Assembly (NCBI RefSeq): GCF_022045235.1
Contig: NW_027266271.1
Coordinates: 26,908,001 to 26,972,000 of the forward strand
Origin: Haliotis cracherodii
Taxonomy: Eukaryota
DNA length: 64,000 nt
Direction of reading: 5' to 3'
Below, in pieces: positions 897 through 62,916 of the stretch (within the stretch, counting starts at the first letter, position 1; each line of letters begins with the position of its first letter). Below the pieces are notes generated by a model. That model ran no database searches and was not told where the DNA came from. It worked only from the letters and a program-made list of their open reading frames with translations. A program made the position numbers and the translations under genes.

Positions 897-3800
897 CTAG
901 AACGACCAAATCATATTCTTTTGGAAACTCTTTTGTTTTGACGACATATTCATTTCGGTCACTGCATCAAATTCTTTTCTCAAGCATTTTTTGTGTGTGT
1001 TCTGAAAAAATAGGTATATCGTCGTTGAGGAAGATGTATCAAAAGAAGCTACATGTATCTAAGGAAAAAGGATACATATTGCTTCCAACACAACATTTAG
1101 ATTTATACTGGTAAGGTAATCTAAAAGATACTGTAAATCGTGAAATTAATGCGTCTCCAAAAGAATGCGACCACTAGACCCTAGACCCTAGACTCAATAT
1201 GAATGCAACACCCCCTCCTCTCAAGCATCAGTGGATTTATATCTAAAGATGTCCTCAGTCATGTTTAGAATCCTCACCTTAATCCAACCTTACATTAATC
1301 CAATCACACGCCAAATAGCACCTTTTATTACATGGAAATATCTTGAAGTAAAAAATACGTTACCATACAATGGTTACAGTATTCATTGAACAATATGACT
1401 TCAGCGGGGCACAGGAGGCCCAGTTGCTAAAGGCGCGCCCTTAATCGTGTCAGAAACTTGATATTAGGTTTAAATCTCCGATACACACTGTTTGTGTTAA
1501 TATGTTTGTTTAAGACGCCGCATTTCGCTATGCAGAATTGTCTCCCTTAAGTGAGTGAGTATGTTTTAACACCGCTTTTAGCAATATTCCAGCAATATCA
1601 CGGCGGGGGACACCGGGCTTCACACATTGTACCCATGTCGGAAATCGAACCCGGGTCTTCGGCGTGACGAGCGAATGCTTTAACCACTAGGATACCCGAC
1701 CGCCCCGTATCCCTTAAGCGTGTCAGGAACTTGATATTAGGATTCGATGCCAGATACACCCTGTTTGGTGTTTATAGGTTTGTCGAAGGTCTCGCATTTC
1801 GCTGAGCAGAGTTGACTCACTCAAGCGTGCCATAAGCCTGATCTTAGGTTCGGGTCCCCGATATACTGCTTGTGTTGCTATGTTTGTGGGAAAAGGTTCG
1901 GGTCCCCGATGTACTGCTTATGATGCTATGTTTGTGGGCAATACACCAATGTGGTGCACGTCCTGCATAATTCCGGCCTTCCTTCCACATTAAGTTGACA
2001 CGCCGTCATATAAGTGGAGAACTGTTCAAAGCGGAGATAACCTTGACTCACTCAATATGACATAAGCGATCATTAACAAAGCAATGCCTGGAAATGCCTC
2101 AGATAATGTCGAGAGTTGTCGGCCCTTGTCGTGACTCATTACTTGAGTTGGAAAGTATGGGGGCTGAAATAAGAAAACGTGAACAATAGCACAGGTACAT
2201 ACCTGTTTTCTCCATGGAAGAAAATTCTCACTGCCCCCATAATCATAATGGATTTCTTCACCGGCAAGTATTGATCTCAATGCAAAGAAACTAACGTGAG
2301 GTTCCCCGTCCACAAAGATCGTCCTTGACCTTATATTTGGGATTCTCCATTCATCGTTGATAAGTCTCCCATAAGAACCATCTTCGTCTGACGCATCAAC
2401 CCTTGGAATATGAAATAGGGCGGAAATATTTGAGAATTAACTTCACTTTGTGTGTGTTCAATGGAGTATGAAACTTCATGTGTTGGCATGGTTGATCGAT
2501 GGTATACCATTCGCCAACCTCAAACACAGTGCCTGATCCACCATTCTGTTGACACATTCGGTTCACAGTAAATACACCTTCGTTTTCAGTTGGGTTTTTT
2601 CTGTGAAATGCTTACGCCTACAATTAATCTTGGTATTTAATATGTGTTTTTCCTTTCATATTTCCAGTCCAGACAGCCATCTAAAACACAGTGAACATGA
2701 TTCACTTTCTGCGAAAACAAAATTGAACTACTTGATTCGTATCTGTATCGTATTCACGTCATATATTGTACTTATAGCAAGTCTCTTTACGGTCTCTTCA
2801 TGGTTAAGTTAGCGGGAAGTTTAGGATAGAAACCATACCAACTCGCAATGCTCCTAATTAGAACACTTACCAAAACCGTGTACTGCGATGGATTATTTGA
2901 AATGTGTAGGTGTTGTCGTCTATATCTGGTTCTATGAGGTCCCGTATTCCATTGTAATACGTTACGTATTCGCCTCGAGCAATGTAAGTATTTGCAACTA
3001 TCCCTCTCCCTGTGAGGTAAAAGATGAAATTATAATGACAAAACGTAAATTTGTTCTTAAAATTAAGAGAAAATGTCATCATTTGCATTCACTTCTAACG
3101 CTTACGCATTGGTGAATGCGTTTAGTTAGCGCAACTTTGAAACGTATTTCGGTTATATCATAGCGTGTCAGAGCTTGAAGTGAAACCCACGATCACAGGT
3201 ATAGAGTCGACAAACCAGGCAGCTTAATCAGGAAGCAGCGGGATTCGAACTCACTATCTAAAGTATATCCGAAAAGTTCTGGGTGGATTCGACTAGGCAG
3301 CGCTGTTACGACGTAAATTGTAATAACGCGGTGAAATATGGGCTGCGTGTAGAAGGGACAAGGACCCTCAGCTGACAATGTGCCTAACCAGCCTGACTGT
3401 GCCAGGATCACCCACAGCCTCTTTGCTGCATTTATATAATTAAATCTCTAAGAAGAAGAAGAAAACCCAGACCTTTAGGGCGTCCAAAATCAACAACACG
3501 AAGATACTCGGGAGAAATGTCAGAACGTCGAATGGCTGCCTTTGCTGCTGCTAGTCGTTGCTGCCATGGACATAGTTTTCCCTGAGGAGCAAACATGTAC
3601 GTATATAAGAAAGGATAGGATTTATCCAACTTCTAAAAACCTCTCAAAGAAGTTATGTACGTATGCATTGAAGGCCTGTCTTGAAAAAGAGGAGTCAGGA
3701 GAAGGACGGAAAATATGTCGGTATTATGGGCCCCGTCTTTAACTTCTAGGTAGTAGGGACCCGTGTTTAACTGCATGTGCCCTGAGAAGGAAACGTTTAG

Positions 3801-4942
3801 ATTGTGGGGACCCGTTTTTAACTGCAGGGGCCTTGAGAAGGAAACGTTTAGATTGTGAAACTGCAGGGGCCTTGAGAAGGAAACGTTTAGGTTGTGGGGA
3901 CCCGTCTATAACTGCAGGGACCTTGAGAAGGAAACGTTTAGGTTGTAGGAACCCGTCTATAACTGAAGAGGCCTTGAGAAGGAAACGTTTGGATTGTAGG
4001 AACCCGTCTATAACTGAAGAGGCCTTGAGAAGGAACGTTTGGATTGTAGGAACCCGTCTATAACTGAAGAGGCCTTGAGAAGGAAACGTTTGGATTGTAG
4101 GAACCCGTCTATAACTGAAGAGGCCTTCAGAAGGAAACGTTTAGATAGTAGGGACCCGTCTATAACTGCAGAGGCCTTGAAAAGGAAACGTTTAGGTTGT
4201 AGGGACCCGTCTATAACTGCAGAGGCCTTAAGAAACAAAAACATGAATTTCGTGAGGGTTCTTGAGAAGGAAACGTGTATGTATGTGTGATGCATGTGTC
4301 CTGAGAAGCTATGTACTTATAGCGCCCCGATGGCTTTGAGAAGCAAGAATTGTAGATATTGAGCACCCATCATGTCAATAAGTGCAACAAACCTCTTTCT
4401 AAAATAAGGATAAAAGAGCCCATCGTACGACTCCGAACATATTATAAGCACGTGTTTATGAATCATTATCAGATAGTGATATAAGACCAGGTGTTCGTGA
4501 AAAGGTGAGCCTATCCTGCCCAGCCCGTGTCACTCGTCGAAAACAGATGCAGAAACAATACAACAATACTATTATTTATCTTCTTCTTCTACTGAACAGT
4601 AGCGTTTTCTACTGAACAGTAACGACACTGGTGTATTGTTCTGGAAAAAAAGCAAATTATTATCTTATGTTCATTCACTGGTTTTCCTCACGAGCATTTC
4701 TTCTTATTGCACAGTGAACACGCATAATTTAATACAATGAAAACGACAAACCCACTTTCCATATTCCAATGATGTATAATACGAGCTCCCAGATGTATTA
4801 ATCGCATCACTTTCGCAACTCGAAACAGATCAACCAAGAAAACTGAGCGTGTAAGGCAAACCTCAAAACTATTCCTCGCTTGGCATCCACCAAGCTCCAA
4901 AATAATCCAGAAAGTGATTAGATATATGGCCAATCTTCTCAT
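897..4942 (-). CDS. Gene A: signal peptide + SETD8/KMT5A-like SET-domain protein (~210 aa, 5 exons)
   Basis: Exons 4942-4862 (MRRLAIYLITFWIILELGGCQARNSFE), 3581-3473 (GKLCPWQQRLAAAKAAIRRSDISPEYLRVVDFGRPK), 3009-2871 (GRGIVANTYIARGEYVTYYNG...RFW), 2401-2203 (VDASDEDGSYGRLINDEW...GEEIHYDYGGSENFLPWRKQ) and a tentative last exon 1001-897. All introns are GT-AG, phases 0/1/2/0, and the spliced frame is open. SET motifs GxG, YxG, RLIN, EIxYDY and post-SET PW are present. The last exon is less certain. Confidence 0.8.
1405..2054 (+). mobile_element. Degenerate tRNA-derived SINE with tandemly amplified ~110-bp internal segment, interrupted by a younger SINE
   Basis: tRNA-like head GGGGCACAGGAGGCCCAG, about three diverged repeats of CCCTTAA.CGTGTCAG..ACTTGATATTAGG, and a tail CCACATTAAGTTGACACGCCGT...ACTCACTCA shared with SINE family B. 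Confidence 0.55.
1551..1706 (-). mobile_element. tRNA-derived SINE, family A
   Basis: Reverse complement of the 63687 element, with A/B boxes, (CACT)n tail and TCCCTTAAG target-site duplication. Confidence 0.9.
3755..4275. repeat. 51-bp minisatellite (~10 units) in intron 1 of gene A
   Basis: Unit GAAGGAAACGTTTGGATTGTAGGAACCCGTCTATAACTGAAGAGGCCTTGA. One unit has a 12-bp deletion and one has a 1-bp deletion. Confidence 0.95.
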
Positions 4943-8103: not shown

Positions 8104-11100
8104 TCACTGGTTGTCCTCATTTTCCAATTGGCATGTCGGCATGAATACTGTCTTCAAAAGATCTAACCACGTTCTTCTCTTTGACTGAGGATGCGTCCAT
8201 GTTTTCTGTGACTGAAATGTACAACATAGCTATCAACTGAAATATAGCAGATGTTGTCATTATCTGAGCCCCGATGAAGCATGGACAGGGATAATAAATG
8301 TATATGTACGATTCAGACTATACCATGAGCATCTGTTTTTGATTCACTATCAAAAAGTGATGATACCAGGTGTTCAAGAAAAGGTGAGCGTATACTGCTC
8401 TATCGCTGACACCCATCACAAACACATGCAAAGACAGTCAATTGTTTGCTTGAAACATCTCTGAAACATATGTCACAAGTCAAAATATGGAATTGCCTCG
8501 GTACAAGTATGGTACTAGTAGAATATGCATTAATAACGCTAAAGCGGAATTGACTATGCCATAACACTGGATCAAATACACATAAGTACATCAAGTACAA
8601 CCTTGCACTTATGTCCGAGATATAATAAAGAATAATGCATGCATTTTCTTAAACATGATCAAATCCCTATGCATTGTAAGGTACAAAACTTTAAACAAAA
8701 GAGCATCCATAATCATGGTATTCTAACTCGAATCGTATGAACCTTCTTCGGCCCTTAGATGGAAGTCCCTAGTACTTTATTGTTTGCCATAAGGAGCTAT
8801 TAGATTGGATCTTGTGGACAAGATGGTGGTCCTGTTGACTGCATGTCATCTGATCCCAACGGCTTTGGACATTGCTCAAAATCACCCACTGAATTTGTTT
8901 CTGATTCGACTATTTCAAGGGCGCCGTGGTATGGCAGGAATAGCAAACTCAACAAATTAAATGAAATTTTTGATCACATACTTTTTCATGGAGGTATGAA
9001 GGGGGTATGTCAGAACTTCGGTTGGCTTCTCTGTCCTCTGTTTTCAGTTGCTTCTTCTTCTGCGGGAAAGACATTTATAAAATACACTGTCGGGGTTTCA
9101 AACCATGGAATAGATACAATTAAAAGAAAATATGAAAGAGAAGTAGGACATTTCTATTGATAACGTTTAGGTATTAAGTAAACATTCGACCACTGACCAT
9201 TTTTCATAACGAACCTGTCGCCATGGGAAGGTAGTAGCCCCGTGTTTGTAGTTGAAACGGATCTCTTCACCAGTTCTTATGAATCTGCGGGCAAGAAAGG
9301 CTATGTGTGCTTCTCCATCAACAAAGAAAACTCTTGGTCGTGCATTTGGGGTAATCCATTCATCATTCAAAAGTCGACCATAAGACCCATCCTCTTCGGA
9401 AGCATCAATCCTTTTACAGTAAAACATATTATTGTCAAATACATACACTAACTGAAATATGTTTTTATTAAAGTTGTATTCTCCAAATATACGGGGGAGT
9501 GTATGTTTGTGGGGTGGGTGGGGTGTATTCTTGAGATGTCCCCTTGGATTAAAGGCATGATTCATAGTACGCTACCGACACCTCAAACAAAAAATACACA
9601 TGAAGTCTTGAAACACTTATCGTGAGCATTTACGGATAGTTAAGCAGAAACTTACCAAAAACTATTGCGATAATGGTTCAGTTGAAAGAGATAATCGTGG
9701 TCAAAATCATTCAGGTCTGGTTTCTCTGAACTGTGTATACCATGGTAATAGGTGATAAAATCACCAGGAGAAAACTCCTTGCCCGCAACTATTCCCCTTC
9801 CTGAAATCGAGACGGAAACATATTCATTATCAATAGAAACAGGGGTGTTTAAACTTGAAAAGCTGTGTTTAATCCGAGAACCATCCTGCCAACAGAGGGC
9901 ACTGGGTCTTTTATCCGGCCTTGACGGAAATAGCCGAACGTAAGATTGTCCGAATACTAATGTCACTTATGCGAGTGGTACTACATGTGTGATTCATAGT
10001 TCCAAAACTAATTGCTTGTCCGTTATCCCGGGACTAGCAATTTGTTTTTCGAGCCAGGAATTTCCAACTCTGTTTTTTTGGTGGCCCAATCCCCCAAGAC
10101 TGAAATTCAATGTGAAAAATGCTATCAAATGGCATGCCAAAATCCAAAATCGTGGTTTCGAACACCAGCATCGTTCACGACAAGCATCACTTCGGGCTTT
10201 CCTCCCACATTAAGCTGCCAGAGTGTGATATAACTGAGATATATCTTGAACGATGGTATTAGTATGATTACATGGAGGTTTAAACATTTCGTATTTAAGT
10301 TACAGATTTTTAAGGGATAATTTAACATTTACAAGATGCGACCGAACCTAGCATCAGGTGTACATCTAATAACAATATATGGTTGTCATGTGCTTTCCAA
10401 AGAAAGCAAATATGTTATATTCAGCAACCTTCTCATTGCTCAACCATTGAACTGATTAGTACTCAGGTAGGTGTTCAACAGCCAATGTCTTCAATGCACA
10501 TGTGCCAACAATATGCAGTGTATCACAACCTTTGTGAGGTCCGAAGTCCACTACGCGGAGGTATGACGGTGATATATCTGAATTGCGGATGGCTTCTCTT
10601 GCTTCTGCAAACGGATGCTTCTTCGGCTGTGGTAAAAAAGAAAAGCCAGAGAAAAACCAGTCACGTATATCTGCAAAAACAGATTCCACTGGGCGTAAAA
10701 GACGAACTAGTGGTGAACATTATCTGAATGAGTATGGGATATATACAAATACTATAACAGATTTATGTTCATTAGGTTCAGAATGAAGTTAACTTACGAC
10801 TATTTGTTATAACGAACCTGTCGCCATGGGAAGGTAGTAGCCCCGTGTTTGTAGTTGTAACGGATCTCTTCACCAGCTTTTATGACCTTGCGGGCAAGAA
10901 AGGCTATGTGTGCCTGACCATCAACAAAGAACACCCTTGTTCTTGCATTTGGAGTCTTCCAATCATCATTGAAAAATCGCCCGTAAGACCCATCCTCTTC
11001 GGAAGCATCGATCCTTTCAGAATTATATATGGTATTGCCTTTTAATGAGGTATTGATTACATTTGCTAGCAAGTTGTACAAATGGTTATCAAATATCGTG

Positions 11101-13949
11101 ATGCACAGAATTATTTCGTGATGATTCTTAATAATGGAATTTAAAGGAAAAAAGGCCACATACAAAAACACGTCAACCCAAGAAAATAACCAGTCTTGAT
11201 AATCCCCCGACACAGATTCCATTTGGAGTACCAAAAAATTAAATAACGGTAAAAATCATATGAATGGATCACTACAATCAGTGATGAACCAGGTTTTACA
11301 CGAACAAAATTTACACGACAAGAGTTATGGAACATTCTATCCGTTGTAGTTTATTCTGCAGTGTTATATGACAATGGATCTTCTTGGTTTGATCAAGAGA
11401 AAGGAAATTGCAATAATTTACCAGAAGGTGTTGTGGTAATGGTTCAGCTTAAATAGAAAGTCGTAGTCAGGATCATTGAGCTCTGGTTGCTGTGCACTGT
11501 GTATGCCATGATAATAGGTGATAAAATCACCAGGAGAAAAGTCTTTGCCTGCTACTATTCCCTTTCCTGTAAATCAAAGCGGAAAGTGTTTCTTCATTTT
11601 CATCTTTAAAAAAGGGAGCACGGGTGGCCCAGTCGTCTAAGGCGCTGGGATTCGCTGTTCAGAGGGTACGCCAGACACCGATGATTGTGGGTTCGAATGC
11701 TTCGCCCCGATTATCTTTCTAGGTTTGTCAACACCATACCCGTGCTCGTGGGATTCACCGAAGTGGTGAACGTCTGAGACCTGCATCACTTCGAGTCTTT
11801 TCTCCCACATTAAGCTGACATGCCGTAATATACTTTTAAAAGCGGCGTTAAACCCAACTCACTTTCTCGCTTAAAACAACATTGGCTCTGATTAGCGGAG
11901 GAAATTCTACTTCTGTACCTCTCACACAGGGCAACTATTAAACAATACGAATTTATTTTCAATAATACCAAATACATTTCTCTTGTACAAAAATGTATCC
12001 AGTTCTACATGGAATATTTTAATTTTGAAGAATGAGAGAGTTAAAATTTAACTTCCCATGGGCAATATTTCAGTCATGACGATAATTTTGACCAAAAAAC
12101 ATCAGGACAGCAACATATTGAACGGCGATGATTGTAATCATCGTTTATGTTTTCATATTAATATACGCACATGTTGCCCCCATCATGAAGGCTATCTCTA
12201 ACATACCAATACTCTTTGACCTGAACAGTATTCAAGTTATGTCACAGCGTACTAAAGGTATAATTACTGTACCAGTTGGAGGTCCAAAATCCACCAGGTG
12301 GAGGTAGGAAGGTGCCTTGTCCAGACTGCGGATAGCTTCTCTTGCTACTGCGAATGGATGTTTTGGCTATGGAAGATGAANNNNNNNNNNNNNNNNNNNN
12401 NNNNNNNNNNNNNNNNNNNNNNNNNNNNNNNNNNNNNNNNNNNNNNNNNNNNNNNNNNNNNNNNNNNNNNNNNNNNNNNNNNNNNNNNNNNNNNNNNNNN
12501 NNNNNNNNNNNNNNNNNNTGTTTGGCCCCAATTTTAAATATTTGATTGAACCCTCTAGATGGAAGATGGAAGTGAGTGAGTGAGTGAGTGAGTGAGTGAG
12601 TGAGTGACGATACATTGAAGAGTGTTTGGCCCCAATTTTAAATATTTGATTGAACCCTCTAGTGCGGGCGTGTTGCTTATAAACCAGTGAAAATCAAGGC
12701 GAATCGGACGTAATTATAAAGGCAATGTGTGTATAAAACCGTCTTTCGAAAGTTAAGGCTTGGCGCCAGGAAGCAACCTTAGGAAAAACAAATATACTTG
12801 TTTTCTAAAATGGTTCTACTGTACTTACACACGTGAAACTTCGAACCGTATAGGTGTAGCAATTACGTCCTTCGTCCAATGTTCATTAATGACTGCGCGG
12901 TTCACAACGTTGTTGTCTCAGACGGTAAGGTACTCAAGCGGTCGAATTGAAAGCAAGTAAACCGAACGCATGAACATCGGCCCTTGTTGTCCGAGTGCGA
13001 TCACACACAGAGTGCAATCAGTCAAATTGCAGTTACCAGTTTGTAATAGAATTTAAGAATTTACCTTGATGGGTGAAACAGCACATACTTCAGTCAGGTA
13101 GATTATATAATTGAGAGTGTGTCAAATATGTGTGTATATCGCACGTTGATCAGTAATAGTTGAGAGTTTATCGAGTCTGAGTGTATACCACATGTCAGTC
13201 AGTAATAGTTGAGAGTTTATCGTGTCTGAGTGTATACCACATGTCAGTCAGTAATAGTTGAGAGTTTATCGTGTCTGAGTGTATACCACATGTCGGTCAG
13301 TAATAGTTGAGAGTTTATCGTGTCTAATTGTATACCACATGTCAGTCAGTAATAGTTAAGAGTTTAACGTGTCTGAGTGTATACCACATGTCGGTCAGTA
13401 ATAGTTGAGAGTTTATCGTGTCTAGTTGTATACCACATGTCAGTCAGTAATAGTTGAGAGTTTATCGTGTCTGAGTGTATACCACATGTCGGTCAGTAAT
13501 AGTTGAGGGTTTATCGTGTCTGAGTGTATACCACATGTCGGTCAGTAATAGTTGAGAGTTTATCGTGTCTAATTGTATACCACATGTCAGTCAGTAATAG
13601 TTGAGAGTTTATCGTGTCTGAGTGTATACCACATGTCGGTCAGTCATAGTTGAGAGTTTATCGTCTCTGAGAGTATACCACATATCAGTCAGTAATAGTT
13701 GAGAGTTCGACAGGTGAGAGTTTCTTTGGCGGTAGAACGAGGACACACTAATCACTCCACCTGAATGCACACGGCTCACACACTGATATTACTATAGCAT
13801 TAGCCACATAGAGTACATTACACGTCATGGACATCAACCTACCGCTACCCTTCATCAGTAACACAAACCTCTGCAGCCTCAAGCGTCGCATATTCATCCG
13901 GAATCCAACACATACAGTAAATCGCCGCAAAAACAGATAAACCATGCAT
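8104..13949 (-). CDS. Gene B: signal-peptide-like leader + two tandem SETD8-like SET domains (~379 aa predicted)
   Basis: Exons 13949-13869 (MHGLSVFAAIYCMCWIPDEYATLEAAE), SET-1 12366-12273, 11566-11422, 11013-10818, SET-2 10626-10530, 9800-9656, 9410-9215, a degenerate third pre-SET exon 9059-8982 (KKKQLKTEDREANRSSDIPPSYLHEK) and last exon 8211-8104 (SQKTWTHPQSKRRTWLDLLKTVFMPTCQLENEDNQ*). All GT-AG and phase-compatible with no internal stops. Intron 1 spans the assembly gap. Confidence 0.75.
11614..11872 (+). mobile_element. tRNA-derived SINE, family B
   Basis: GGGAGCACGGGTGGCCCAGTCGTCTAAGGCGC head, GGTTCGAAT B box, tail AAAGCGGCGTTAAACCCAACTCAC. Confidence 0.85.
12381..12518. other. Assembly gap (138 N)
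   Basis: Run of N. Confidence 1.
13151..13708. repeat. 49-bp minisatellite (~11.4 units) in intron 1 of gene B
   Basis: Unit CAGTAATAGTTGAGAGTTTATCGTGTCTGAGTGTATACCACATGTC(A/G)GT in head-to-tail copies with no unique spacers. Confidence 0.95.
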
Positions 13950-16072: not shown

Positions 16073-16235
16073 CGGTCGACATGGAAAATCAGAACTTTCA
16101 AGATTATAGGTGAAACGAATTTCTTGACCTGTTTTAATTAACCAATTAACAATCATCGTTGCTTTCGTAATTGGGTTACGCCATTCGTCATTAATAAGAC
16201 GGCAATAGGATCCATCTTCTTGGGATGCATAGATC
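16073..16235 (-). pseudogene. Orphan decayed catalytic SET exon
   Basis: Translates IYASQEDGSYCRLINDEWRNPITKATMIVNWLIKTGQEIRFTYNLESSDFPCRP. It has an internal deletion, DA>YA, PW>PC and donor GT>GC. Flanking 16236-16350 is homologous to the adjacent intron of genes C-E. No other exons are nearby. Confidence 0.85.
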
Positions 16236-16962
16236 CTTTAAATATGAAAATTAACAATATATTACTGCTTCGAACATTAATATTGGGAAGCACGGATCCT
16301 TCAAATATGAAAACTCAAACTAAAATAGCGTTGTGAAGAAATTTGGGCAGGATCGGTGTTTTGAATATGAAAATATTTACAATATCACAGCCGAGGCAGG
16401 AAACGCATGATCTGAGATGCTCTATTAATGTACACTGTACAAATGGACATCCCTTGTGACAATACATACTCTCCAAAAGTAGTATGGGATATTCGAGAAT
16501 AGCAGATGATTACAGAAATACAAAGATTTATCTAATGACGGTAATAGATGGATCAGAACAAAGGAAGGACCAGGTGTAACATGGCAATGAACAGAACATG
16601 TTGGCAGTGTATTGTAGAGGTGCAAACAACTACGAAAGATGACAGGGGTGTCCTCCCAAATCGCCTTTATGCCAAAACACCTTCAGCTTATAACAACAAA
16701 GTTTACAGTTGTATGCACAGCTAGTCTCCTGCCTGTGCCTCTGTAATAGCCGTATTGTTACGAGAAGTTATCTATTTACAATAAGTACATTAAGACTCAA
16801 TAGAAACATGTCATCGATGGACAGTGCAATAGCTAGATTATCATAGATTGTGTTTAAAACTAGTTCGAGAACATTTAAAAGAATAAACTATTATTTCTAA
16901 TAATAACTACATATTTGTAGATCGCTAGAATCCAGCGAGTATTAAATAGGGATTGAGTTTGA

Positions 16963-16963
16963 G

Positions 16964-18146: not shown

Positions 18147-19580
18147 TCAATCTTCTTTATCGATTTTGCAAACCGGCATAAAGGTCGTCTCCAGGAGGCT
18201 CAACCACGTCCTTCGCATACAAAGAAAGTTGGTTTGCACTTTCGATGCCTGAAATATTAATATAGTAATTATGAAATATCAATTGGGGATATCACGTCAA
18301 GCAAATATAAATGTACGAAACAACATGGGACAATTAAACGTGATATGGAAAGCAACGTGATATTAATCCATAGTTATACTATATATAATGAACCTATCTC
18401 CCTTTTGAATATTGTATCGTCGCCTCTTATTGTTACTTGTAAAGTTGGGTCCTTTGAAATCGCCAGAACACTATGATCGTGGGTTCGAATACTGGTTTGC
18501 TCCAATTTTTCTAGGTTTATTAGCACCATACCCGTACCGGTAAAAGTTAAACGTTTAAAGCCTGCATCACTTTGGGCCTTCATCCCGCATTAACCTGACA
18601 CGCCGTGTTTTAACTTGAATACTGTTCAAAGCAGTGTTAAATCCAGCTCATTCATTCACTTACTCACTCGCTCGCTCGCTCGCACGCACGCACTCATATT
18701 GTTACTAAGCATATTATATATCCATGAGCTGGATTTATTTAGGATAATACACTCCCTGCAAACCCATCCAATAGCCATCTTGGCTAGCATTGAAAGGGCA
18801 AGGTGAAGGTTTTGACTCTTACTGTGATGTTGGTCGATATCAAAATTTTAACCTTTTTTAATGTTAATCATCACAAAATCTTTTCTCAAATGACACTCAT
18901 GATGTTCGATCTATAAGCGGTATGTTGGATCAGTTGGTAGTTGTTTACGGTGAATCCTACAAAATCACTTCTCCTTGCTGCTCGAAGTATTGGGACGATA
19001 ACAAAACGGTGCAAGTAAACATAAAATAGGAGGTTCCCTATTCCTGAAGGTGGTCAAAGATAACAATGTTAAACAAGGGTTTTTACGATGTATGCCAAAT
19101 ATTTGACTACATAAACATATGTCTGGTCGACTATGTCAGAAAATGGAACCCGAAAAACTGAAATGTAAACAAATTGTGGAAAAGGATAAAAGAGGCAAGC
19201 ACATGTCGATAATAAGGAAACTATCACATGAAGTCATTCTTATAATTCTTTTTAATCGTAAAAACTTCATACGACACAGGTTTCAATCAGTTCTAAAATT
19301 ACTTTAATTTGAATACAAATATGTATCTTCTGACATGCAGTCTCGCGCCAACTGGAACCGGATTCTATTATATTGTAAATTATTTAACAAGGGAAAATCT
19401 TTTTACACGCGTGTGGATCTAGATAGTTTATTAAATGTATTATATATTTATTAAATTAGAATGGCAGATAGACACGATCTCCCTGATTCAATAAAGTTTA
19501 AAATTTACAGCTAAGAAACGCAAAATATCCTTTCCATTGCCAATTTAATATTTGAAAAGCATTCATACAACAAATTCCTA

Positions 19581-19630
<50 letters not shown>

Positions 19631-22600
19631 TTGTTGATATCAGTCGATTTTCCCCGATGAACGAACATAGGACAACGACAGTCAACTTAGTGAAAGAAAA
19701 TACATCTTACAGATGTCACGCAGAATTCCAGAACTATTTAATATTATAATCACTGATTCAACTTAGGATTCTGCAAAGAAATATTTGAATCAGAATTACT
19801 TGCTCCTTCTTGTAATGAGACAATAGATCGAAGTACGCACTGGTGTATACTTAAACAGTGATAACTGCCCGTCAAGGTTTGACTACCCTGACTACCCTGA
19901 CGGTTTCGTTTAAAAAATACAAATACACGTACAAATACACGAAATAATAGTAAATGTTATCAAATTGGCTCACTGCAAATAAACCAGGCGTACAGGATGA
20001 TGAAGGGAAGCTTGGACAGGATGTGATGGTTCAGAGTCAAGCTTTTTGAGGTACAAAGTCACTTTAACTCTTTTATCGCTCAGGGAATCACCAAAGGTAG
20101 TAGTCCGGAGGTTTTCAAAATAGTCATGTCTACTTTAACGAACAAGGTTGCACTACTTCACAAAGTTGTCATTGTCACAGATGCTTTCTTAAATATAAAA
20201 AACGTTCCCTGCTTTATATGTGAACTATTGTGGAAGCGAATTCTGTATATCGCAACACAGAAATAAATGCAGGAAAGAGTTGCTTCCATTCAAGTTTTAA
20301 CTGTTCACTTTAAGAACGCATACTGCCATGTCGTTGTGTTACAAATTAAAGTTTGGTCGTAAAATACTAACAATGATGGTTTTCTCTTCAAACTAATTTT
20401 CCCATACACCTCAACGGTAAAAATATTAATATGTTGCGATGTAAAACCCACAAATTACCTGTCGCCATGGAAAATCACCATCATTATTATAGTTATAACG
20501 AATTTCTTGACCAGTTGTGATGAATCTGTGAGCAAAAAAGGCAATGTGAGGTCGCCCGTCCGCAAAAATTAACCTCGCTATTGCGTTTGGGTAACGCCAC
20601 TCATCATTCAAGAGACGACCATAGGATCCATCATCTTGGGAAGAATCGATCCTTTCAATATGAAAGAAGAAGAAAATATTACAGCTTGAAAAATGGTATT
20701 AGGAAGCAATGATCCTTCAAATATGGAAACACACAAACAGTAATAGCGTGGTAAATGAATTGTGGCGGCATTAATTTTGAATACAAAAATACACAAAATA
20801 TCTTCGGCCAGACAAGAAAGAGTTCTCAACATTCTACTACACACAGTTTTGCATTGGAAATCATAGATAACAAACAAATTGAAACACATAATCTGAGACG
20901 TTCTAGGAATATACATTCGACAAATTGACATCCCTTATTTGGCTTACCTTTCAATATATAATGTATACTGCCTTGCTCTGATAAATCAGTCTAAGGGCAT
21001 TTTAAACTGAGATTTGTATTGCCAGTTTTCAGAGGGGAAAGGCAACTCCGATGCTTACCAAATATTTTTGCTACCCCAAGACAGTTTAAAGGTGTACTCG
21101 TCTATTACTGGCTCCTTTACACAATATTTTCCATGGTAGTAGGTGATGAAATCGCCTGGAGAGAAGTCCTTGCCAGCAACTATCCCCCTTCCTGAGAACA
21201 AACAACAAAACTGTGTAGTGTAACATTTACTTCATCAGTTGACATACGATGGAGGCTTTCTCATCAGATACTAATGACATAACATTATCTTCGTACGCTT
21301 GTACCATTACGTTTTCAAATCCGTGGACAAATGGCAATGAGACATGATTGCATAGAGTTGTAAATATTTCTTGAATAGAGATGTAAATAGTTCATTAAGA
21401 TACACAACGCTACCAGTTCAGTAGGGCTATATTATTCGCCCCCCAAGACCACTCTTGGTTGTCTTTTGGAATATTTTGATATACTGATATATAGTACAAT
21501 AGCATCACTAGCCAACTAAATAATATTTGTAGCAAGTCGTACACCATAATGGTACTTGAAAATACATGGAAGCATTTCGGAACAAGCATTACAATTGACC
21601 TCAGGTCAACGTATGAGTGAGTGAGTGAGTGAGTTGGGTTTAACGCCGCTTTTAACATTATTCCAGTTATATCACGGCGTGTCAGCTTAATGTGGGAGGA
21701 AAGCCCAAAGTGATGCAGGTCTTAGACGTTTACCACTTCGGTGAAACCCACGAGCACGGGTATGGTGCTGACAAACCTAGAAACATAGTCGGGGTGAACC
21801 GGGATTCGAACCCACAACCATAGGTTTCTGGCGTGTCCAGGGGACGCAACTCTGCACAGCGAATCGCAGCGCCTTAGACGACTGGGCCACCCGTGCCCCC
21901 GTCAACGTATGATGGCACAGTTATAATTGCAGTAGTAACGACACAGGTATAGGCTTAACATAGCTTATCACTTTATTGCTTGGTGAATTAAACATCTCCC
22001 TATAGCTATGACGCAACCTGTTATGGTTTATTATGTAATGCTGCAGTTGTAAAATGGTGGACCCTTTCCCGAATAAAGTATTAATTCAGTCGGCACAATA
22101 AGGTATAGTTTCAGTAGTCACAGGAAAAAACCTAGTGACAGTTTTTTACGACAAACGCTGGGAAGCGTACACCACAAAACCAAGCTACTGCAATGAAATA
22201 CACTACCAATCGGATGTCCAAGGTGAGCTATACGAAGGTATGAAGGCGACATGTCGGATCGTCGGATAGCTGCCCCTGCTTCCTTGATCTGCTGTCTTGT
22301 ATGCTGGGAAGAAGAACGACAAGGACAATACTTGTATTTATTACTTCAGGTCAAGCTAAGTTCAGATTCAAGTAATCAGTTTTACAGGAGTGAGTGAGTG
22401 AGTATGGTTTTACGCCGTCTTTAGCAATGTTCAAGCAATATCACGGCGGGGAACAACAGAAATGGGCTTCACACATTGTACGCATGTCGGGAATCGAACC
22501 CGGGTCTTAATCAGTCCTTAATCAGCTGTCTGGTATGCTGGGAGGAGAAACAGATAACGATAAAATGGGTATAACTTCAGTTCCGATTCAAGTTATCAGT

Positions 22601-28600: not shown

Positions 28601-28797
28601 TTCTTCTTTAAACAAAGTAAACACTGTTTACTGAGCAGGGGAATTTCACTCATCCACATCTCATGCTCACATCAATGAAGTCAATGCAAACATAAAAATA
28701 CAGATAACAAACATACCTCAGCCACCGTCAGTGCCACACATTCATCCTTATTCCAAATTGTGAAGATAACCGTCACCAAGATATACAGCCTATACAT
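18147..28797 (-). CDS. Gene C: signal peptide + SETD8-like SET protein (~201 aa); leader exon assignment uncertain
   Basis: Exons 28797-28717 (MYRLYILVTVIFTIWNKDECVALTVAE), 22303-22207, 21191-21059 (GRGIVAGKDFSPGDFITYYHG...KNIW), 20651-20459 (IDSSQDDGSYGRLLNDEW...QEIRYNY...FPWRQ) and 18248-18147 (ASKVQTNFLCMRRTWLSLLETTFMPVCKIDKED*). The nearer leader exon at 27177-27121 is truncated by a LINE, so the gene may be a pseudogene. Confidence 0.7.
18475..18692 (+). mobile_element. Old family-B SINE in last intron (matching copies at ~38538-38728 and ~55971-56155)
   Basis: GGTTCGAAT...GCACCATACCCGT...CACTTTGGGCCTT...ACTCACT at the same intronic position in genes C, D and E. Confidence 0.75.
19585..19627. 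repeat. (TA)n microsatellite
   Basis: About 21 TA units, absent from the paralogous introns. Confidence 0.95.
21617..21900 (-). mobile_element. SINE family B, recent insertion
   Basis: Full length with TSD GTCAACGTATGA (21605-21616 / 21901-21912). The site is empty in gene D (~42295). Confidence 0.9.
22388..22508 (-). mobile_element. SINE family A, 5'-truncated
   Basis: Matches family A, at the same insertion point as 42787 in gene D. Confidence 0.85.
22712..27120 (-). mobile_element. Degenerate I/Nimb-like LINE (ORF1, AP endonuclease, RT fragments, RNase H)
   Basis: ORF1 26634-26993 (LNPFAISKGI...VTRLRSGSVLLEC), endonuclease 25439-25882 (PKPCIIMG...HNPLWGS...SLDLSL), DPSNYRP at ~24800, RNase H-like IFTD...SKDG at ~23900, 3' tail AATATTGCCGA...AACTCACT. 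Many stops and frameshifts. Confidence 0.85.
27121..27177 (-). pseudogene. Truncated leader (signal peptide) exon
   Basis: MYRLCILVTVFFTIWNKDE followed by an abrupt junction into LINE sequence. The last 8 codons and the GT donor are lost. Confidence 0.85.
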
Positions 28798-54755: not shown

Positions 54756-54812
54756 CGTCCACAGACATAGGGACGCAACCCACGACAAACTGCAATCTCA
54801 ATGTAGCGATGT

Positions 54813-55793: not shown

Positions 55794-58700
55794 TTACAAT
55801 TTTTTGTCCATTTTGCAAACCGGCAAAAAGGTCGTCTTGAGGAGGTCCAACCATGTCCTTTGAATACAAAAATTGGTTTGCACTTTCGATGCCTGAAATA
55901 TTAATATAATAATTATAAAATATCAACAGATAATATTATGTAAAACAAATACAAATGTACGAAAGTACAAGTTCGAATCCCGAGTTTGCCCCGATTATGT
56001 TTCCAGGTTTGTCAGCACCATACCCGTATTCGCTGGTTATACCGAAGTTGTAAACGTTTAAGGCCTTCGTCACTTTGGGCCTTCCTCCAACATTGAGCTG
56101 ACACGTCCTGACTAAACTGGAATACTGCTCAAAGTGTTAAATCAAACTCACTGACTCTTATTGTTGCCAAGCATATTCTACATGCATGAGCTTGCATTAG
56201 TTCAGATAAGACACTCCTTCGACAAACATCAAATAGTTATCTTGGCAAGCATTGGGAGGAAAAGGTGACAGTCATGACCCTTACTACGATGTTGGTCGAT
56301 ATCAAAAGTTTAACCTCATTTACACTCTTCAAAAAAAGAAACGCACAGGTAGTATGTAGTTCATGGAAGCTGACTACACTAAAAAATCCGGTATATAAAT
56401 TGGATATATGTTATTTGAAAATGTTGTTGGCCTGATATTCGACAAACGGTCCTTTTATACGCAGCCATGGTCAATGTCTTAAACGGCACTGTTATCACAC
56501 TGTCATTGAGGAAAACAGTAAAGCAAAATACACGTGTAACTAATGGCATTCGTAACTCTTGATAGTGGCTATAAAAAGGCAAGCATAAGCCAATAATTTG
56601 CCATTCAATTGTCAACATTTTTCAAGTTCGAAAATGCCGAGACTCGGCGCTGCCGATCGGAACATCGCCGCAGGACGAATCCAAAGAGGGGAATCGCAGT
56701 CTTCTGGTGCACGCCACTTCAACGTCCACCATAGCACAATTTGCCGCCTTTGGGGCCGATACACACAGTTCAATTCCACCCTGCACAGGATCGCAACATT
56801 CGACTGTTCCACCTACGTCATCGCAATGCCACAGCTACGGAGACTGCAGGACGCATCCCTGGTTTGAGGAGGATGTCGGACCAGACTGTCAGGAACCATC
56901 TTCGCGAGGCTGGAATCCATCCCAGAAGACCAGTTATCGTCCCTGTTTTGCAACAGATTCATCGACAGCGACGCATGCGTTGGTGCCACCTTACAGCCTT
57001 GGAATTTGGGAAATTGGAGATGAGTGTGGTTTAACGATGAATCACGATTTCCTCTTCACCAGCGTAATGGAAGACAACGTGTTTATCGTCGTCGAAATGA
57101 GCGTTTTGGCCAGAATTATGTACGTGAATTCGACAATTTCGGTGACGGTAGTGTCATATCCTACACCACGAGATCTGACTTGGTTGTGGTTCAGGGACAT
57201 TTGACAGCAAATCGCTACATGAATAAAATCCTTCAACTTCACCTTACTAATCATTGAAGCCAGAGGGAGCTGTTTCAACAGGACAACGCTCCAACGAACA
57301 CAGTTAGTGTCACGGTAGACTACCTTCATAATGCCAAAATCAACGACTTGCCCTGCCTGTCGAGATATCCAGACCCAATCGAACACCTCTGGAATGAACT
57401 CGATCGACATGTACGTCAACGTCAGAACACGCTGCAGACACTCCAAAAACTGGCCAACGCGTTACAAGTAGAATGGCGCAGAATTCCGCAGGACAGAATT
57501 CGTACACTTATCCAGTCAGTGCCGAGGAGATGTTGTGATTGCTGCCCGGGGTGGTCACACGAGATACTGAGTTCAGTGCAACCTTCTGTGACATGACAAT
57601 GAACAGTTTTCAATGCCTGTGTCCAACGACAACATGTGACTATCGAGCTCCAAAATTTCATATTTTTTTCTATTATATCAAATTACATATATCGATTAGG
57701 AACAATAATTTTACTAACAATCTACCTGCGCGTTTCTTGTTTTAAGGGGGTATGTAAATTAACAAAATACTTTGTCACTGACGGTCATGATGTTCACACT
57801 ACAGGTGGAGGACTAAGTTGATATGCGGTCTACGGTGAATCCTACAGTAACACTACTCAATTGCTACTTCATTTTGTGACGATTACCAAATAAGCCATAA
57901 GTCCAATGCTTCCTTTGTTGCCTTTGTTATGAGCTGAAGATGACTGAACCTTACACATCAAACTACACAATGGTATTAAGAGGGTTGCTGGTATGTTATT
58001 ACATTATATGTGTAACTTTTTAAGGATATAGTCCATCTGACGCTAGTATGAAGTAACTGTTATTACAGACTATTATCTTAATAAAAAGTGTTGTATATCA
58101 AACAACATTCAAGCAATTACCGTTTTACGGTAATCCACCAATTGCTTACGTACGGAAAACGAAAGCGAGTGGCCACTGATGTCACTGTATAAACATACAT
58201 AAACTGGCCTTCCGTAGGGATTCCTTACATATGTTTGTGTTTCTCGTCGCCAAGGGTTGCCGGGGAGGGGGATGAGTGATGGATGAGCAAAAAATAAAAA
58301 AAAAAAAACCAAGTAAAATAGGAGGTTCCCTATGGCCGAAGGTGGTGAAAGCTAACAATGTGAAACCAAAGGGTTTTGACGATGTGTGCCAAATATTAAA
58401 TTAAACATTTGTCTGGTCTACTATTGAGCGCAAATTGAAACCGAATAAACTCAACGTAAAAACATTTGGGAAAAGGATCTAAGAGGAAAGCACATGCAGA
58501 TATAAAACAACCGTCATATTGTAATTGAAAACATTCTTTCCCTTGACCTATTTCAAGTCATAAAAACTGCAAAAAAACAAGTTCGAATCAGTTCAGAAAT
58601 CATCCTAATTTTAAAACAGATATGTATCGTCTGACATGAAGTCTCGGGCGAATTGAAACGGGATACTTTTGTCTTGAAAATCTTTTTACACGGGTTTAGA

Positions 58701-61700
58701 TCTAAACAGATCATTAAATATGTTTATATCTATTAAATTAGAATCGCAGATGAGCACGATCTCCCTAATTCAATAAAGTTTAAATTTTATAACAAAGAAA
58801 TGCAAAATATCCCTTCCAAAGGGGAACCGATTTCATATTTGAAAAGCATTCATACAATAAATTCCTACAATATTCTCATGGAAATTTATATTAATCGTTT
58901 CCCCGAATTTCACAGATGAGCGAAAATAGGACAATTCAGCTATTTATTATTACAAGCACTGATTCAACTTAGGTTTCTGCAAAGAAATATTTAAATCAGA
59001 ATGTCTTGTATCTTCTTGTAATGAGACAGTAGATCAAAGTACGCACTTGTCTATAGTTTAACAGTGAGAAAGTTTTGACTACCCTGACGGTTTCGATTAT
59101 ATATATTTGTATGAAGTACGGAATAACAAAATAAACATACAAACAGGCGAAATAATGGTAAATGTTATCAAATTGGCTCACTGCAAGTAAGCCAGGCGTA
59201 CAGGATGATGAAGGGAAACTTGGACAGGATGTGATGGTTCAGAGTCAATCTTTTTGAGGTACAAAGTCACTTTAACTCTCTTATCGTTCAGTGAATCACC
59301 AAAGATAGTAGGCCGGAGGGTTTCAAAATTGGTAGCAAGTTATGTCTACTTTAACGGACAAGGTAGCACCACCCTCAAACTTCACATATATGACAGAGGC
59401 CCGCCTGTGTGATTGCCAGACCCAGTCGCAGGTGCTTTCTCAAACATCAACACCGCTCCCTGCTTTATATGTGAACTAGTGTGGAAGCGAATTCTATTTG
59501 ACAAAACACAGAAATAAATGTAGCAAAGAGTTTGGTTTCAAGAATCGAGATACAAATGCTGATGGACGGTGAGAAATTTCGGAATATATGATATTTGTAT
59601 TCTTTCGGCGGGAGGGAATTTTGCATGCGGCGGGACATGAGAAACACGACAATGAGGACGCCTTAAAAGAAATAGCACATTTATATTTATCAGACATAGT
59701 AATGTATTTTTAAACGTTAAATGCTATTAATGATTGTTCTCTTTCCCAAATGATTCGTCCATACACCTCAACAGTGAAAGTATTAATTTGCTTACATTAA
59801 AGCCACAAATTACCTGTCGCCATGGAAAATCACTATTATGATTATAGTTGAAACGAATTTCTTGACCAGTTTTGATGAATCTGTGAGCGAAGTAGGCAAT
59901 GTGAAGTCGCCCGTCCGCAAAAAGTAATCTTGCCATAGCATTTGGGTAACGCCACTCATCATTCAGGAGACGACCATAGGATCCATCTTCTTGGGAACCA
60001 TCGATCCTTTTAATATGGAAATACATAAAATATTACAGCTTGAAAAATGATACTAGGAAGCTTTGATCCGTGCAATAAGAAAACACGCAAACAGTAACAG
60101 CGTGGTAAATGAATTGAGGCAGCATCAATTTGAGTATGAAAATACACAAAATATCTTAGGCCGGACAATACACTTATACATCTGAGACGTTCTAGGATTA
60201 GGCTTACTTTTCATTATATAATGTAGAGCTGGTGCATTATACTGCCTTGCTTTGATACAATCCACCTTGGGGCATTTTTAACTGAGATTTGTATTACTAG
60301 TTTTCAGAGGGGAAAGACATCTCCGATGCTTACCAAAAGGTGCGACCGTCGTAAGGCAGTTCAAAGGTGTACTCGTCTATTATTGGCTTCTTTACACAAT
60401 ATTTACCATGGTAGTAGGTAATGAAATCGCCTGGGGCAAAATCCTTGCCAGCAACTATCCCCCTTCCTGAGAACAAACAATCAACTCTGTAGTGTAACAT
60501 TAAACGTTACCTCATCAATTGATAGGGGGCACTGGTGGCCCAGGCGTCTAAGGCGCCGCGATTGGCTGTGCAGAGTTGCGTCCCTTGGGCATGCCTGAAA
60601 CCTATGATTGTTGGTTCGAATCCCGGTTCGCCCCGATTATGGGTTTCACCGAAGTGGTAAACGTCTGAGACCTGCATCACTTCGGGCTTTCCTCCCACAT
60701 TACGCCGTAGTATAACTGGAATACTGTTAAAAGCGGCGTTAAACCCAACTCACTCACTCACTCATCAATTGATACACGATAGAGGCTTGTTAACCATGCT
60801 AATGACGTAACATAATTATCTTCGCGTGCCTTGTGTCAATACGTTTGCAAATCCGTGGACACAGGACAATAAGTCTTTAAGAGTCATGATTGCAAAGATT
60901 TGAATATAGTACTTGAATAAAATTAACAAAGTAAATAGTCCTTTAAGATACACAACGCTACAAGTTCAATGGGGCAAAATCGTATTCGTCTCCCAAAAGA
61001 AATTGCAAAGTTTCGTGTTTGTCTTTTGGAAGACAGTAGGAAGATGCAGGTTTTGATATACTTATATATGTTCAACAATAGTACAAGTACTCCAATGAAT
61101 AAGATTTCTAGCAAAACTTATACCATAATATTACTGGAAAATACGTGGTAGCATTTTGGAACAAGCATAAATACAATTAGGGTGGCACATCTATAATTAC
61201 AGTTGTTACGACACAGGTACAGGCTGAACATAGCTTATCACTTCATTGCTTGGTGAGTTAAACATTCCCCTAAACTTGTGACGCTACCTCTTATGCTATT
61301 ATGTAATACTGTAGTTGTATAATGGTGAACCCTTTACCGAATGAAGTATTCATTTATTTAGTAGGCACAACATAGGTATAGTTTCAGTTGTCACAGAAAA
61401 AGACATAGTGACAGTTTTTTTACGACAAACGCTGGGAAGCATAAACCACAAAACCAAGCTACTGCAATGAAATACACTACCAATCGGATGTCCAAGGTGA
61501 GCTATACGAAGGTATGAAGGCGACATGTCGGATCGTCGGATAGCTGCCCTTGCTTCCTTGATCTGCTGTCTTGTATGCTGGGAGGAAGGACAAGGATGAT
61601 ACTTGTAATACATCAGGTCAAGCTAAGTTCAGATTCAAGTAATCAGTTTTATAGGACGAAACATAAGCACAAAACACAGTAGTTGTAAGACGATATGAAA

Positions 61701-62916
61701 TAGGGTAATATTGCAACTAGTTATAATTACAATCGGAAGATTCTGCAATGTTCTCCTTGAGGGATGCTCATAGGCTCTGGTATGGATATCTATGAACGGA
61801 ACGATTTTAAGCATCTTTATATCGTCCCAAGGCGAGCTATACGAAGGTATAAAGGCAACATGTCTGATCGTCGGATAGGTGCCCTTGCTTCCTTAATCTG
61901 TTGCCTGGTATGCGGGGAGGAGAAACAGATAACGATAAAATGTGTATTACTTCAGTTCCGATTCAAGTTATCAGTTTCGATGTGGATATAGTTTTACAGA
62001 AAGAAATATCTGTACATATCACGGTAGTTGTAGTATCTTTGAAATGAAATACGGTGATGTTGAATATGAAATATAAGATACTTTGAGCGATAAATCGCAA
62101 AAAAAAAACGAAAAACGAAGCGTGGTTTATTTCACGATAAAATATTGTTCTATCACAACGTTTTTTCTGGGGATTTGAACACGCTCGCAACTTGATGACG
62201 TCTTATTGGACGACGTTATAGTTTTAGAGGGAAGTGCCTAGTGAGTTGTTCCCCATAGATGTAGCTGGGCTAAGCAGATATACGCTATGGTCGAAACGAT
62301 CGCATCAAAAAGTGAGCGAGACACGACAATCGCCATTGGGAGAAAAGGTGCAGATAATGACGTGAAAATTGTGAGAGTATAAAATCTCCTGTACATAAAA
62401 TGGACATGTCCATGTCCATGTCCATGTGATTGTAATCAGAGAGTCACGTAAGAAAAAAAAGACTCGTGGACGTTGTTCATCGGACACCAAAACACAGTGT
62501 TTTACTGTACGATAAACAACTCCAATTCGTCATTTATTCCGTAATTAAAATGACACTCGGCAGATTCTGCCATGTTCCCCTTGGAATACGCTCATCGTCT
62601 CTCATATTAATATCATTGATGAGTACGGTTTCAACCTCTATATATAAGTAGTCCCTCGGATGTGATAGGAATATAGATTAAACCCTCAATTAATTCCGAA
62701 ATCTCTCTCAACAATGTACTTCTTCTTTAAACAAAGTAAACACTGTTTACTGAGCAGGGGAATTTCACTCATCCACATCTCATGCTCACATCAATGAAGT
62801 CAATGCAAACATAAAAATACAGATAACAAACATACCTCAGCCACCGTCAGTGCCACACATTCATCCTTATTCCAAATTGTGAAGATAACCGTCACCAAGA
62901 TATACAGCCTATACAT
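55794..62916 (-). CDS. Gene E: signal peptide + SETD8-like SET protein (~200 aa, 5 exons)
   Basis: Exons 62916-62836 (MYRLYILVTVIFTIWNKDECVALTVAE), 61577-61481, 60466-60334, 60006-59814 (IDGSQEDGSYGRLLNDEW...QEIRFNY...FPWRQ) and 55892-55794 (ASKVQTNFCIQRTWLDLLKTTFLPVCKMDKKL*). GT-AG, open frame. Confidence 0.85.
56323..57750 (+). mobile_element. Tc1-family DNA transposon with frameshifted transposase
   Basis: TA|CACTCTTCAAAAAAAGAAACGCACAGGTAG and its inverted repeat ending |TA. Transposase ~56634-57570 has an HTH start MPRL, WFNDESRF, LFQQDNA and PDPIEHLW. The site is empty in paralogues (~38895, ~18860). Confidence 0.92.
60525..60760 (+). mobile_element. SINE family B, recent insertion
   Basis: TSD CTCATCAATTGATA (60511-60524 / 60761-60774). 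Confidence 0.9.
61820..61912 (-). pseudogene. Duplicated pre-SET exon (pseudoexon)
   Basis: HTRQQIKEARAPIRRSDMLPLYLRIARLGTI* with acceptor AG>CG and no donor. Further-decayed counterparts lie at ~42936-42997 and ~22520-22537. Confidence 0.85.

Follow-up and report, generated by a model that had tools for sequence, protein, structure and literature searches.

A cluster of small SETD8-like SET genes with a signal-peptide-like leader exon in the abalone Haliotis cracherodii

A stretch of 64,000 nucleotides from the abalone Haliotis cracherodii, C8:26908001-26972000 (C8 is contig NW_027266271.1), was analyzed and is referred to as the window. It represents the middle of a single Haliotis-specific cluster of small KMT5A/SETD8-like SET genes located at C8 ~26.87-27.01 Mb. 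Five genes, A to E, were found in the window, all on the minus strand, and each of them starts with a leader exon of 81 bp which probably encodes a cleavable signal peptide directing the product to the endoplasmic reticulum (ER). Judged from its sequence, the cluster suggests that an animal routes SET-domain proteins into the secretory pathway. As far as we know, SET-domain proteins are regarded as intracellular and mostly as chromatin enzymes, and the only exported ones known to us are bacterial effectors. A sequence-only reading of the same window had proposed five secreted SETD8-like proteins with one SET unit each, encoded between positions 897 and 62916. Positions given below without a contig name refer to the window.

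Comparisons by tblastx and tblastn revealed a common unit of four coding exons followed by a tail exon. The leader exon ends in phase 0, the exon encoding the pre-SET helix in phase 1, the exon encoding the N-terminal half of the SET domain in phase 2, and the exon encoding its C-terminal half, which ends ...PWRQ|gt, again in phase 0. Enumeration of GT/AG boundaries yielded exactly one model per gene with a translation equal to a database protein for genes B, C, D, and E, and all four models translate exactly to H. cracherodii RefSeq proteins. Gene B (8107..13949) encodes 379 aa comprising a leader, two SET units, the stub of a third pre-SET helix, and a tail (exons 13949-13869, 12366-12273, 11566-11422, 11013-10818, 10626-10530, 9800-9656, 9410-9215, 9059-8982 for the stub, and 8211-8107); its model, assembled stepwise along GT-AG junctions, is exactly P0153, XP_071101642. 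RefSeq additionally lists a gene B isoform of 323 aa, in which reading continues past the donor that follows the second SET unit. Gene C (18147..28797) encodes 201 aa in exons 28797-28717 (leader), 22303-22207, 21191-21059, 20651-20459, and 18248-18147, exactly matching P0171. The products of genes D and E comprise 200 aa each; gene D (38208..43862; exons 43862-43782 for the leader, 42701-42605, 41815-41683, 41282-41090, and 38306-38208) corresponds exactly to P0158, XP_071101656, and gene E (55794..62916; exons 62916-62836 for the leader, 61577-61481, 60466-60334, 60006-59814, and 55892-55794) to P0161, XP_071101651. For gene A (757..4942), encoding 179 aa in exons 4942-4862 (leader), 3581-3473, 3009-2871, 2401-2203, and 771-760 followed by the stop codon, all junctions are GT-AG, and the product is identical to the H. 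rufescens orthologue P0172 at 172 of 179 residues.

The three-exon SET unit begins and ends in phase 0; therefore, such units can be chained, as is the case for two units in gene B and probably for six units in an array on the plus strand upstream of the window. Hence, the proposal of one SET unit per gene and five in all had to be revised: the window contains six units, two of them supplied by gene B along with its stub, and in addition an exon-4 pseudogene fragment. The proposed extent of the family was also incorrect. No exon boundary was found at position 897, the 3' exons are the last ones listed above for each gene, and the family continues on both sides of the window.

Transcription was analyzed by aligning contigs from sequencing runs to positions 57401-63400, the gene E region. 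Runs X2 and X3 (organism B) provided contigs which match gene E with 0 mismatches and skip the introns at junctions 62836>61577, 61480>60465, and 60333>60005. A contig of 562 nt (record 14) covers 62934-62836, 61577-61480, 60465-60333, and 60005-59813, and its 39 further letters correspond to exon 5. Contigs of X2 and X3 continue for 39-84 nt into this exon, which is located beyond the aligned stretch, and records 9 and 11 show the same junctions. Because the contigs join exons without introns, X2 and X3 were taken as RNA; a processed retrocopy is an unlikely source because a genome-wide profile search found copies of exon 4 confined to intron-containing loci of the cluster and a few distant ones. 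Runs X1 and X4 (organism A) gave unspliced contigs which differ by ~5% and look like DNA of a relative. The junction of leader and pre-SET exon as well as transcription, both named before as checks of the family, were thus confirmed for gene E. Chance or mis-called exons were ruled out, since the models correspond to RefSeq proteins and spliced contigs.

The leader exons agree with their first description: all five comprise 81 bp from ATG to GAG|gt, their translations are as written, and the next exon follows in phase 0 after a pyrimidine-rich acceptor. Each leader ATG has a purine at -3 and is preceded by an in-frame stop codon 24-81 nt upstream with no intervening ATG. These stops rule out an upstream extension of the reading frame within the same exon; the gene E contigs end at 62934, 18 nt 5' of the ATG, and leave room for a further 5' coding exon. 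Leaders were scored in a script by hand rules, namely the layout of n-, h-, and c-regions and the (-3,-1) rule, using four A-type leaders, five of the C/D/E-type, and one of the A2-type, gene A2 being located upstream of the window. The scored leaders carry a net charge of +1 or +2 before a hydrophobic core of 9-15 residues with a mean Kyte-Doolittle hydropathy of 1.7-2.6. A-type leaders from four species consist of the n-region MRR (+2), a core of 12-15 residues, and CQA|RN or CQG|RN at residue 22; gene A itself shows MRR, an h-region of 12 residues, and CQA|RN at this position. Leaders of C, D, E, and an H. rubra homologue start with MYR or MFR (+1), followed by a core of 12 residues with a mean hydropathy of 2.1-2.4 and CVA|LT or CMA|LT at residue 22. 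In the A2 leader the same motif is located at residue 33, and the candidate leader of the plus-strand array has a 12-residue core and Cys-Ser-Ala before Lys. Altogether, the classical anatomy of a cleavable signal peptide (basic n-region, h-region of 7-15 residues, small residues at -3 and -1, length ~15-30) was found in A, A2, C, D, E, and the array candidate, and weakly in B. A predicted length of 22 residues is typical of eukaryotic signal peptides.

In an alignment of 12 proteins, no leader position is invariant other than M1, L4, C20, and A22, the last two being the predicted -3 and -1 residues. The A-type and C/D/E-type proteins are 47-49% identical overall; their leaders have drifted almost completely. 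The sole substitution seen at -1 is a Gly in the A-type leader of H. rubra; Gly at this position is also accepted by signal peptidase. Four species (H. cracherodii, H. rufescens, H. rubra, and H. asinina) have kept their leaders. A search of the whole assembly with leader exon DNA of the A-type and the C/D/E-type gave matches confined to this cluster, ruling out that the leader was taken from another gene.

The SET domain was confirmed by HMMER. P0004, which for most of its length equals the gene D product, matches PF00856 at positions 1-105 above the curated cut-off, as do P0002 and P0007; single exons of A, B, and E also match, the matching exons being 3 and 4. A phmmer comparison of the gene E product with PDB returned SETD8/KMT5A with an E-value of 2.6e-10 and MLL1 as the next family with 1.7e-4. 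An AlphaFold2 model has a mean predicted local distance difference test (pLDDT) score of 74 with a confident core and values <50 for the tail (residues 163-200). Upon a Foldseek search, the top 25 matches were all SETD8, with a template modeling (TM) score of up to 0.77 at 26% identity. The designation SETD8-like, as used in the sequence-only reading, is therefore justified because SETD8 is the best PDB match by both sequence and fold. Only ~30 residues separate the leader from the SET core.

The GRG loop is conserved, as are Asn119 and the Pro-Trp-Arg motif. Tyr78 of YYHG (SETD8 Tyr245) is nearly invariant, Tyr158 (Tyr336) invariant, and Trp166 (Trp349) again nearly invariant. The cofactor motif NHS reads NDEW or NDDW in every copy within the window, and HMMER aligns the Asp to His299 of SETD8; this residue, Asp120, replaces the His in 46 of 46 aligned sequences. 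Furthermore, the SET-I segment, from YHG to the FW-ID strand, lacks ~11 residues compared with SETD8. At the position aligned with SETD8 Tyr334, which is the Phe/Tyr product-specificity switch, genes D and E and unit B2 have Phe, and genes A and C and unit B1 have Tyr (window 9250-11020 and exon 4 of all genes). Mutation of the NHS His abolishes activity in SUV39H1, G9a, EZH2, and SET7/9. Standard catalysis is therefore doubtful, since this His is lost in every copy; together with the shortened insert on the substrate side, its loss makes a binding role or an altered chemistry likelier than ordinary lysine methylation. Among the roles suggested earlier, the replacement in every copy favors a non-catalytic binder over plain lysine methylation. 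We infer, more weakly, that the domain is no longer a standard histone methyltransferase dependent on S-adenosylmethionine (SAM).

The tail exons of the C/D/E/F-type, gene F being located downstream of the window, have variable ends. They terminate in KMDKEL in D (exon 38208-38306), F, and most H. rufescens copies, in KMDKKL in E (55794-55892), in KIDKED in C (18147-18248), and in KIL in P0156; A and B do not have a tail of this type. The ER-retention pattern of PROSITE is [KRHQSA]-[DENQ]-E-L. Retention of the KDEL type by the KMDKEL tail was ruled out as a feature of the family, because the ending varies (DKEL, DKKL, DKED, DKIL, or absent) and fits no pattern. In the stretch 685-771 (minus strand), exon 5 of gene A encodes only Asp-Val-Ile followed by TAA, and the same frame beyond the stop resembles the tail of genes B to F (W-x-x-L-L ... 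P-x-C). The gene A tail was lost to a nonsense change, because the frame past the TAA still resembles the conserved tail; this change is shared with H. rufescens.

An exon-4 profile was searched against 1.84 billion representatives and gave 1612 matches. Nearly all of the best 150, which were inspected, are proteins with ND[DEN]H from teleost fish, bivalves, and a holothurian. Full-domain relatives outside Haliotis have polar or basic N-termini, and hydrophobic starts were found only in short fragments beginning inside the domain. Close relatives were obtained only from H. cracherodii, H. rufescens, H. rubra, and H. asinina, both by a word-indexed search with a gene D-like protein and with a profile of 12 Haliotis sequences. 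A maximum-likelihood tree was calculated for 52 domain sequences and rooted on two sequences of the NHS-type. All 18 of 18 Haliotis units form one clade on a long stem, with a Shimodaira-Hasegawa-like approximate likelihood ratio test (SH-aLRT) support of 98. Within this clade, the plus-strand units branch off at the base, and A, B, and C-F group together (SH-aLRT 96); the nearest rows from outside Haliotis are the bivalve protein P0022 and protein P0176. As far as the collections searched show, the expansion is specific to the abalone lineage by sequence comparison, in agreement with the lineage-specific expansion postulated before, and the leader is probably specific to it as well.

Pairwise dN/dS ratios (nonsynonymous over synonymous substitution rates) were determined by the Nei-Gojobori method among C, D, E, and F and range from 0.25 to 0.53 for the whole coding sequence, with the leader evolving no faster than the rest. 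Open frames are kept across four abalone species. From these ratios, the genes appear to be under moderate purifying selection, constrained but not strongly. Strong positive selection as in abalone reproductive proteins was not seen in the pairwise dN/dS values, which include no site test.

Our preferred explanation is that the leader acts as a cleavable signal peptide, and we regard targeting to the ER with subsequent cleavage as probable. The nascent chain would expose a Met, usually one or two basic residues, ~12 hydrophobic residues, a polar stretch, and mostly Cys-x-Ala at positions 20-22. The signal recognition particle would bind the hydrophobic core upon its emergence, the chain would enter the ER co-translationally, and signal peptidase would cut after residue 22. 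The predicted mature product would then consist of ~160-180 residues with one SET module, or of an array of modules, and could, in the lumen or extracellularly, bind lysine or peptides or act as a methyltransferase whose handling of the cofactor is altered.

Several observations weigh against this explanation. The signal-peptide call was made by hand rules, and the anatomy proposed before was reproduced by them for most leaders; the leader of gene B is the weakest. The residues at which it had been aligned with the others (W15, D18, E19, L23, A26, E27) are correct, but it has neither a basic n-region nor a Cys-x-Ala, and its sole (-3,-1) site is LEA|AE at residue 25. The mature parts contain almost no N-x-S/T sequons, their cysteines are variable and often odd in number (3 or 4 in C-F, 1 in A), and by composition they look cytosolic. 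In the AlphaFold2 model, residues 2-42 form one continuous helix, which leaves room for a leader that is a structural N-terminal extension. RNA support at read level was obtained for gene E only, genes A-D relying on RefSeq identity and on orthologues. Full-text searches of the literature returned no abalone proteome or localization evidence for these proteins. Finally, we know of no established supply of SAM in the secretory pathway of animals or outside their cells, so that an enzymatic activity there would need explaining.

The continuous helix, together with the cytosolic-looking mature parts and the wider ND-x-H clade, which is leaderless and presumably intracellular, would fit a leader without targeting function, i.e., a hydrophobic extension of the N-flanking helix used for oligomerization or for binding of a partner or a membrane surface in a cytosolic or nuclear protein. 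We consider this rather unlikely, because ~12 purely hydrophobic residues after Met-x-Arg represent a textbook substrate of the signal recognition particle, the leader drifts freely with only its hydrophobicity and the -3/-1 positions fixed, as in signal peptides and unlike packed helices, and the leader has a pLDDT of only 57-67, as against 96 for the pre-SET helix. The hydrophobic N-terminus is equally good evidence for a leader that targets the ER and stays uncleaved, or for a protein kept inside the cell, either as a short signal anchor or as a resident luminal protein of the ER or Golgi. The helix running on from the leader into the pre-SET helix and the KMDKEL end of most C/D/E/F-type tails, which recalls KDEL, point in this direction, but the cores of 9-15 (mostly 12) residues followed by charged ones are short for spanning a membrane, DKEL departs from the PROSITE pattern and is not conserved as an ending, and an invariant Cys-x-Ala at 20-22 would be expected of a peptidase site. 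Retention or lack of cleavage is thus unlikely. Decay of duplicated DNA, with the gene models being annotation artefacts that yield no functional product, is very improbable: the cluster does contain relics (degenerate copies of exon 2, the broken exon 4 at 16076-16246, the truncated leader at 27177-27121, and an orphan leader outside the window) and the gene A tail is cut by a stop codon, but five genes have intact frames and GT-AG junctions, gene E is represented by spliced transcripts, orthologues are intact in four species, and the dN/dS values are <1.

If the signal-peptide explanation is extended, abalone would secrete SET proteins, some of them with two to six modules chained behind a single signal peptide, which act outside the cytosol as methyltransferases with an altered cofactor site or as new lysine- or peptide-binding modules derived from a chromatin enzyme. 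This extension is put forward only tentatively. Possible settings for secreted products are mucus, haemolymph, gamete coats, and pathogen defence. An arrangement of up to six chained modules is characteristic of extracellular binding proteins and, to our knowledge, has no precedent among SET enzymes.

KMT5A/SETD8/PR-Set7 and the abalone proteins are built alike, with a compact SET domain that is preceded by an N-flanking helix and followed by a short C-flank containing Pro-Trp. The GRG loop, the (E/Y)YHG Tyr, and the second Tyr of ELxYDY also occur in both. In contrast to KMT5A, the abalone proteins have a hydrophobic leader exon instead of the long N-terminal regulatory region, NDE or NDD followed by Trp instead of NHS, and a SET-I segment shortened as described above; furthermore, 14 clustered units, some of them chained in one polypeptide, stand against one gene. 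The wider KMT5A-like ND[DEN]H clade of teleost fish, bivalves, and holothurians, which is automatically annotated and apparently uncharacterized, has the Asn-Asp signature, the Pro-Trp-Arg C-flank, and the overall domain in common with the abalone proteins. Its members differ by the absence of a leader, polar or basic N-termini, C-terminal extensions of 1000-4000 aa in many cases, and a His as the fourth motif residue in place of the abalone Trp. The sea-cucumber protein P0001, annotated with eight SET domains, is made up of C-terminal half-domains that are repeated, and it appears to be a merged gene model; it was not used as a parallel.

Legionella RomA/LegAS4 and Chlamydia NUE are SET effectors which are exported by type III/IV secretion and methylate histones in the host nucleus. 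Like these, the abalone products would be SET proteins leaving the cell that produces them; they differ in being host-encoded, in an altered cofactor motif, and in the Sec61/signal-peptidase route that they would use. Small stand-alone SET proteins of giant viruses and bacteria are similar in size (~150-205 aa) and in their SET-only architecture and represent the nearest clusters of language-model features (0.93-0.95); this feature similarity serves as a lead only, and by sequence searches the abalone family belongs to the KMT5A-like clade of animals.

The genes, including the leader exon, are already present in RefSeq as 'N-lysine methyltransferase KMT5A-like' or 'uncharacterized protein LOC124143016'. 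Full-text literature searches returned no paper describing the family, its signal-like leader, the tandem cassette architecture, or the altered motif. The assumption that the family had not been described thus holds for papers, but not for databases. If our preferred explanation is true, the cluster would clearly exemplify the recruitment of a chromatin domain to the secretory pathway, with tandem multiplication of the module and its chaining into multi-SET polypeptides, and it would raise the question whether lysine methylation, or recognition of lysine or methyl-lysine, occurs outside animal cells. With a non-targeting leader, it would still be a well-defined lineage-specific expansion of an uncharacterized ND-x-H branch of KMT5A-like genes. 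The system is readily testable, since the proteins comprise 180-200 residues, their gene models are exact, and tissues as well as secretions of abalone can easily be obtained.

The extent of the cluster was determined by genome-wide searches covering the 1.18-Gb assembly and by examination of 60 kb on each side of the window. The exon-4 profile detected 14 intact SET units and one pseudogene fragment, all of them within ~145 kb (C8:26.87-27.01 Mb). Gene F (C8:27003640-27011679), corresponding to P0159, is of the C/D/E-type. Upstream of the window, gene A2 (C8:26900388-26905471) is of the A-type and has the longer leader. The plus-strand array consists of six SET units of exons 2, 3, and 4 in tandem (C8:26867010-26890898). 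Its units have phase-0 donors after ...PWRK(Q/K), and in five of six a phase-0 acceptor precedes the next pre-SET exon; a candidate hydrophobic exon of 28 codons (84 bp), which ends ...GCSAKQIYE|gt, is located ~0.9 kb upstream at C8:26866106. By these sequence features, the array is probably one six-SET gene with its own leader. Including this candidate first exon (L002, L008, L003), the array occupies C8:26866106-26890898, 17-42 kb before the window.

Other clusters of SET sequences (C3 18.6-18.7 Mb and 26.07-26.19 Mb; C8 4.27 Mb; C10; C5) were rejected as members of the family, since they gave no tblastn match or EZH-, MLL-, or SUV39-like exons. Distant SET exons of the ND-type are dispersed outside the cluster (L025-L028: C10:10888272, C32:1930023, C18:3755278, and C32:1258423); three of them were translated and read NDGW, NDS, and NDGEW. 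They may be remains of the leaderless ancestral type.

An intact orphan leader without SET exons of its own (L004, C8:26979507-26979587, minus strand) is located 8.6 kb upstream of the gene E leader and is possibly a relic or an alternative first exon. In gene C intron 1, a further leader of the C/D/E-type, truncated to 19 codons and likewise without its own SET exons, is found at 27121..27177 (minus strand). The exon-4 pseudogene fragment (16076..16246, minus strand) was detected by tblastn and reached 51 bits in the genome-wide profile search; it contains an in-frame stop and a deletion of 11 residues. Degenerate copies of exon 2 are located at 43192-43130 and 43000-42932 in gene D and at 61912-61826 in gene E. 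The 5' end of gene C (28371-29194) is 93% identical to that of gene E (62490-63297) over 828 bp, and the two leader exons are identical at the DNA level. This identity, as compared to a dS of ~0.2 elsewhere in the coding sequence, suggests gene conversion or a later duplication of promoter and leader.

An assembly gap is represented by a run of N at 12381..12518 inside gene B intron 1. The acceptor AG of exon 2 is located at 12368-12367, with just 14 intron bases between exon and gap, and no coding frame spans the gap. The H. rufescens orthologue P0002 has the same junction of exons 1 and 2 (...EAAE|PKHPF...) as gene B.

Minisatellites were found in intron 1 of gene A (3753-4234, 51 bp x 9.7) and in intron 1 of gene B (13132-13707, 49 bp x 11.8); their consensus units differ. 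Intron 3 of gene E contains an interspersed element of very high copy number (60520-60770), with a summed contig depth of 10^5-10^6 in all four runs and many rearranged joints. This intron 3 element gave no match in Rfam and is probably a repeat resembling a short interspersed nuclear element. Related copies are located near 11700-11880, 10170-10270, 55985-56150, 1960-2030, and 6390-6460.

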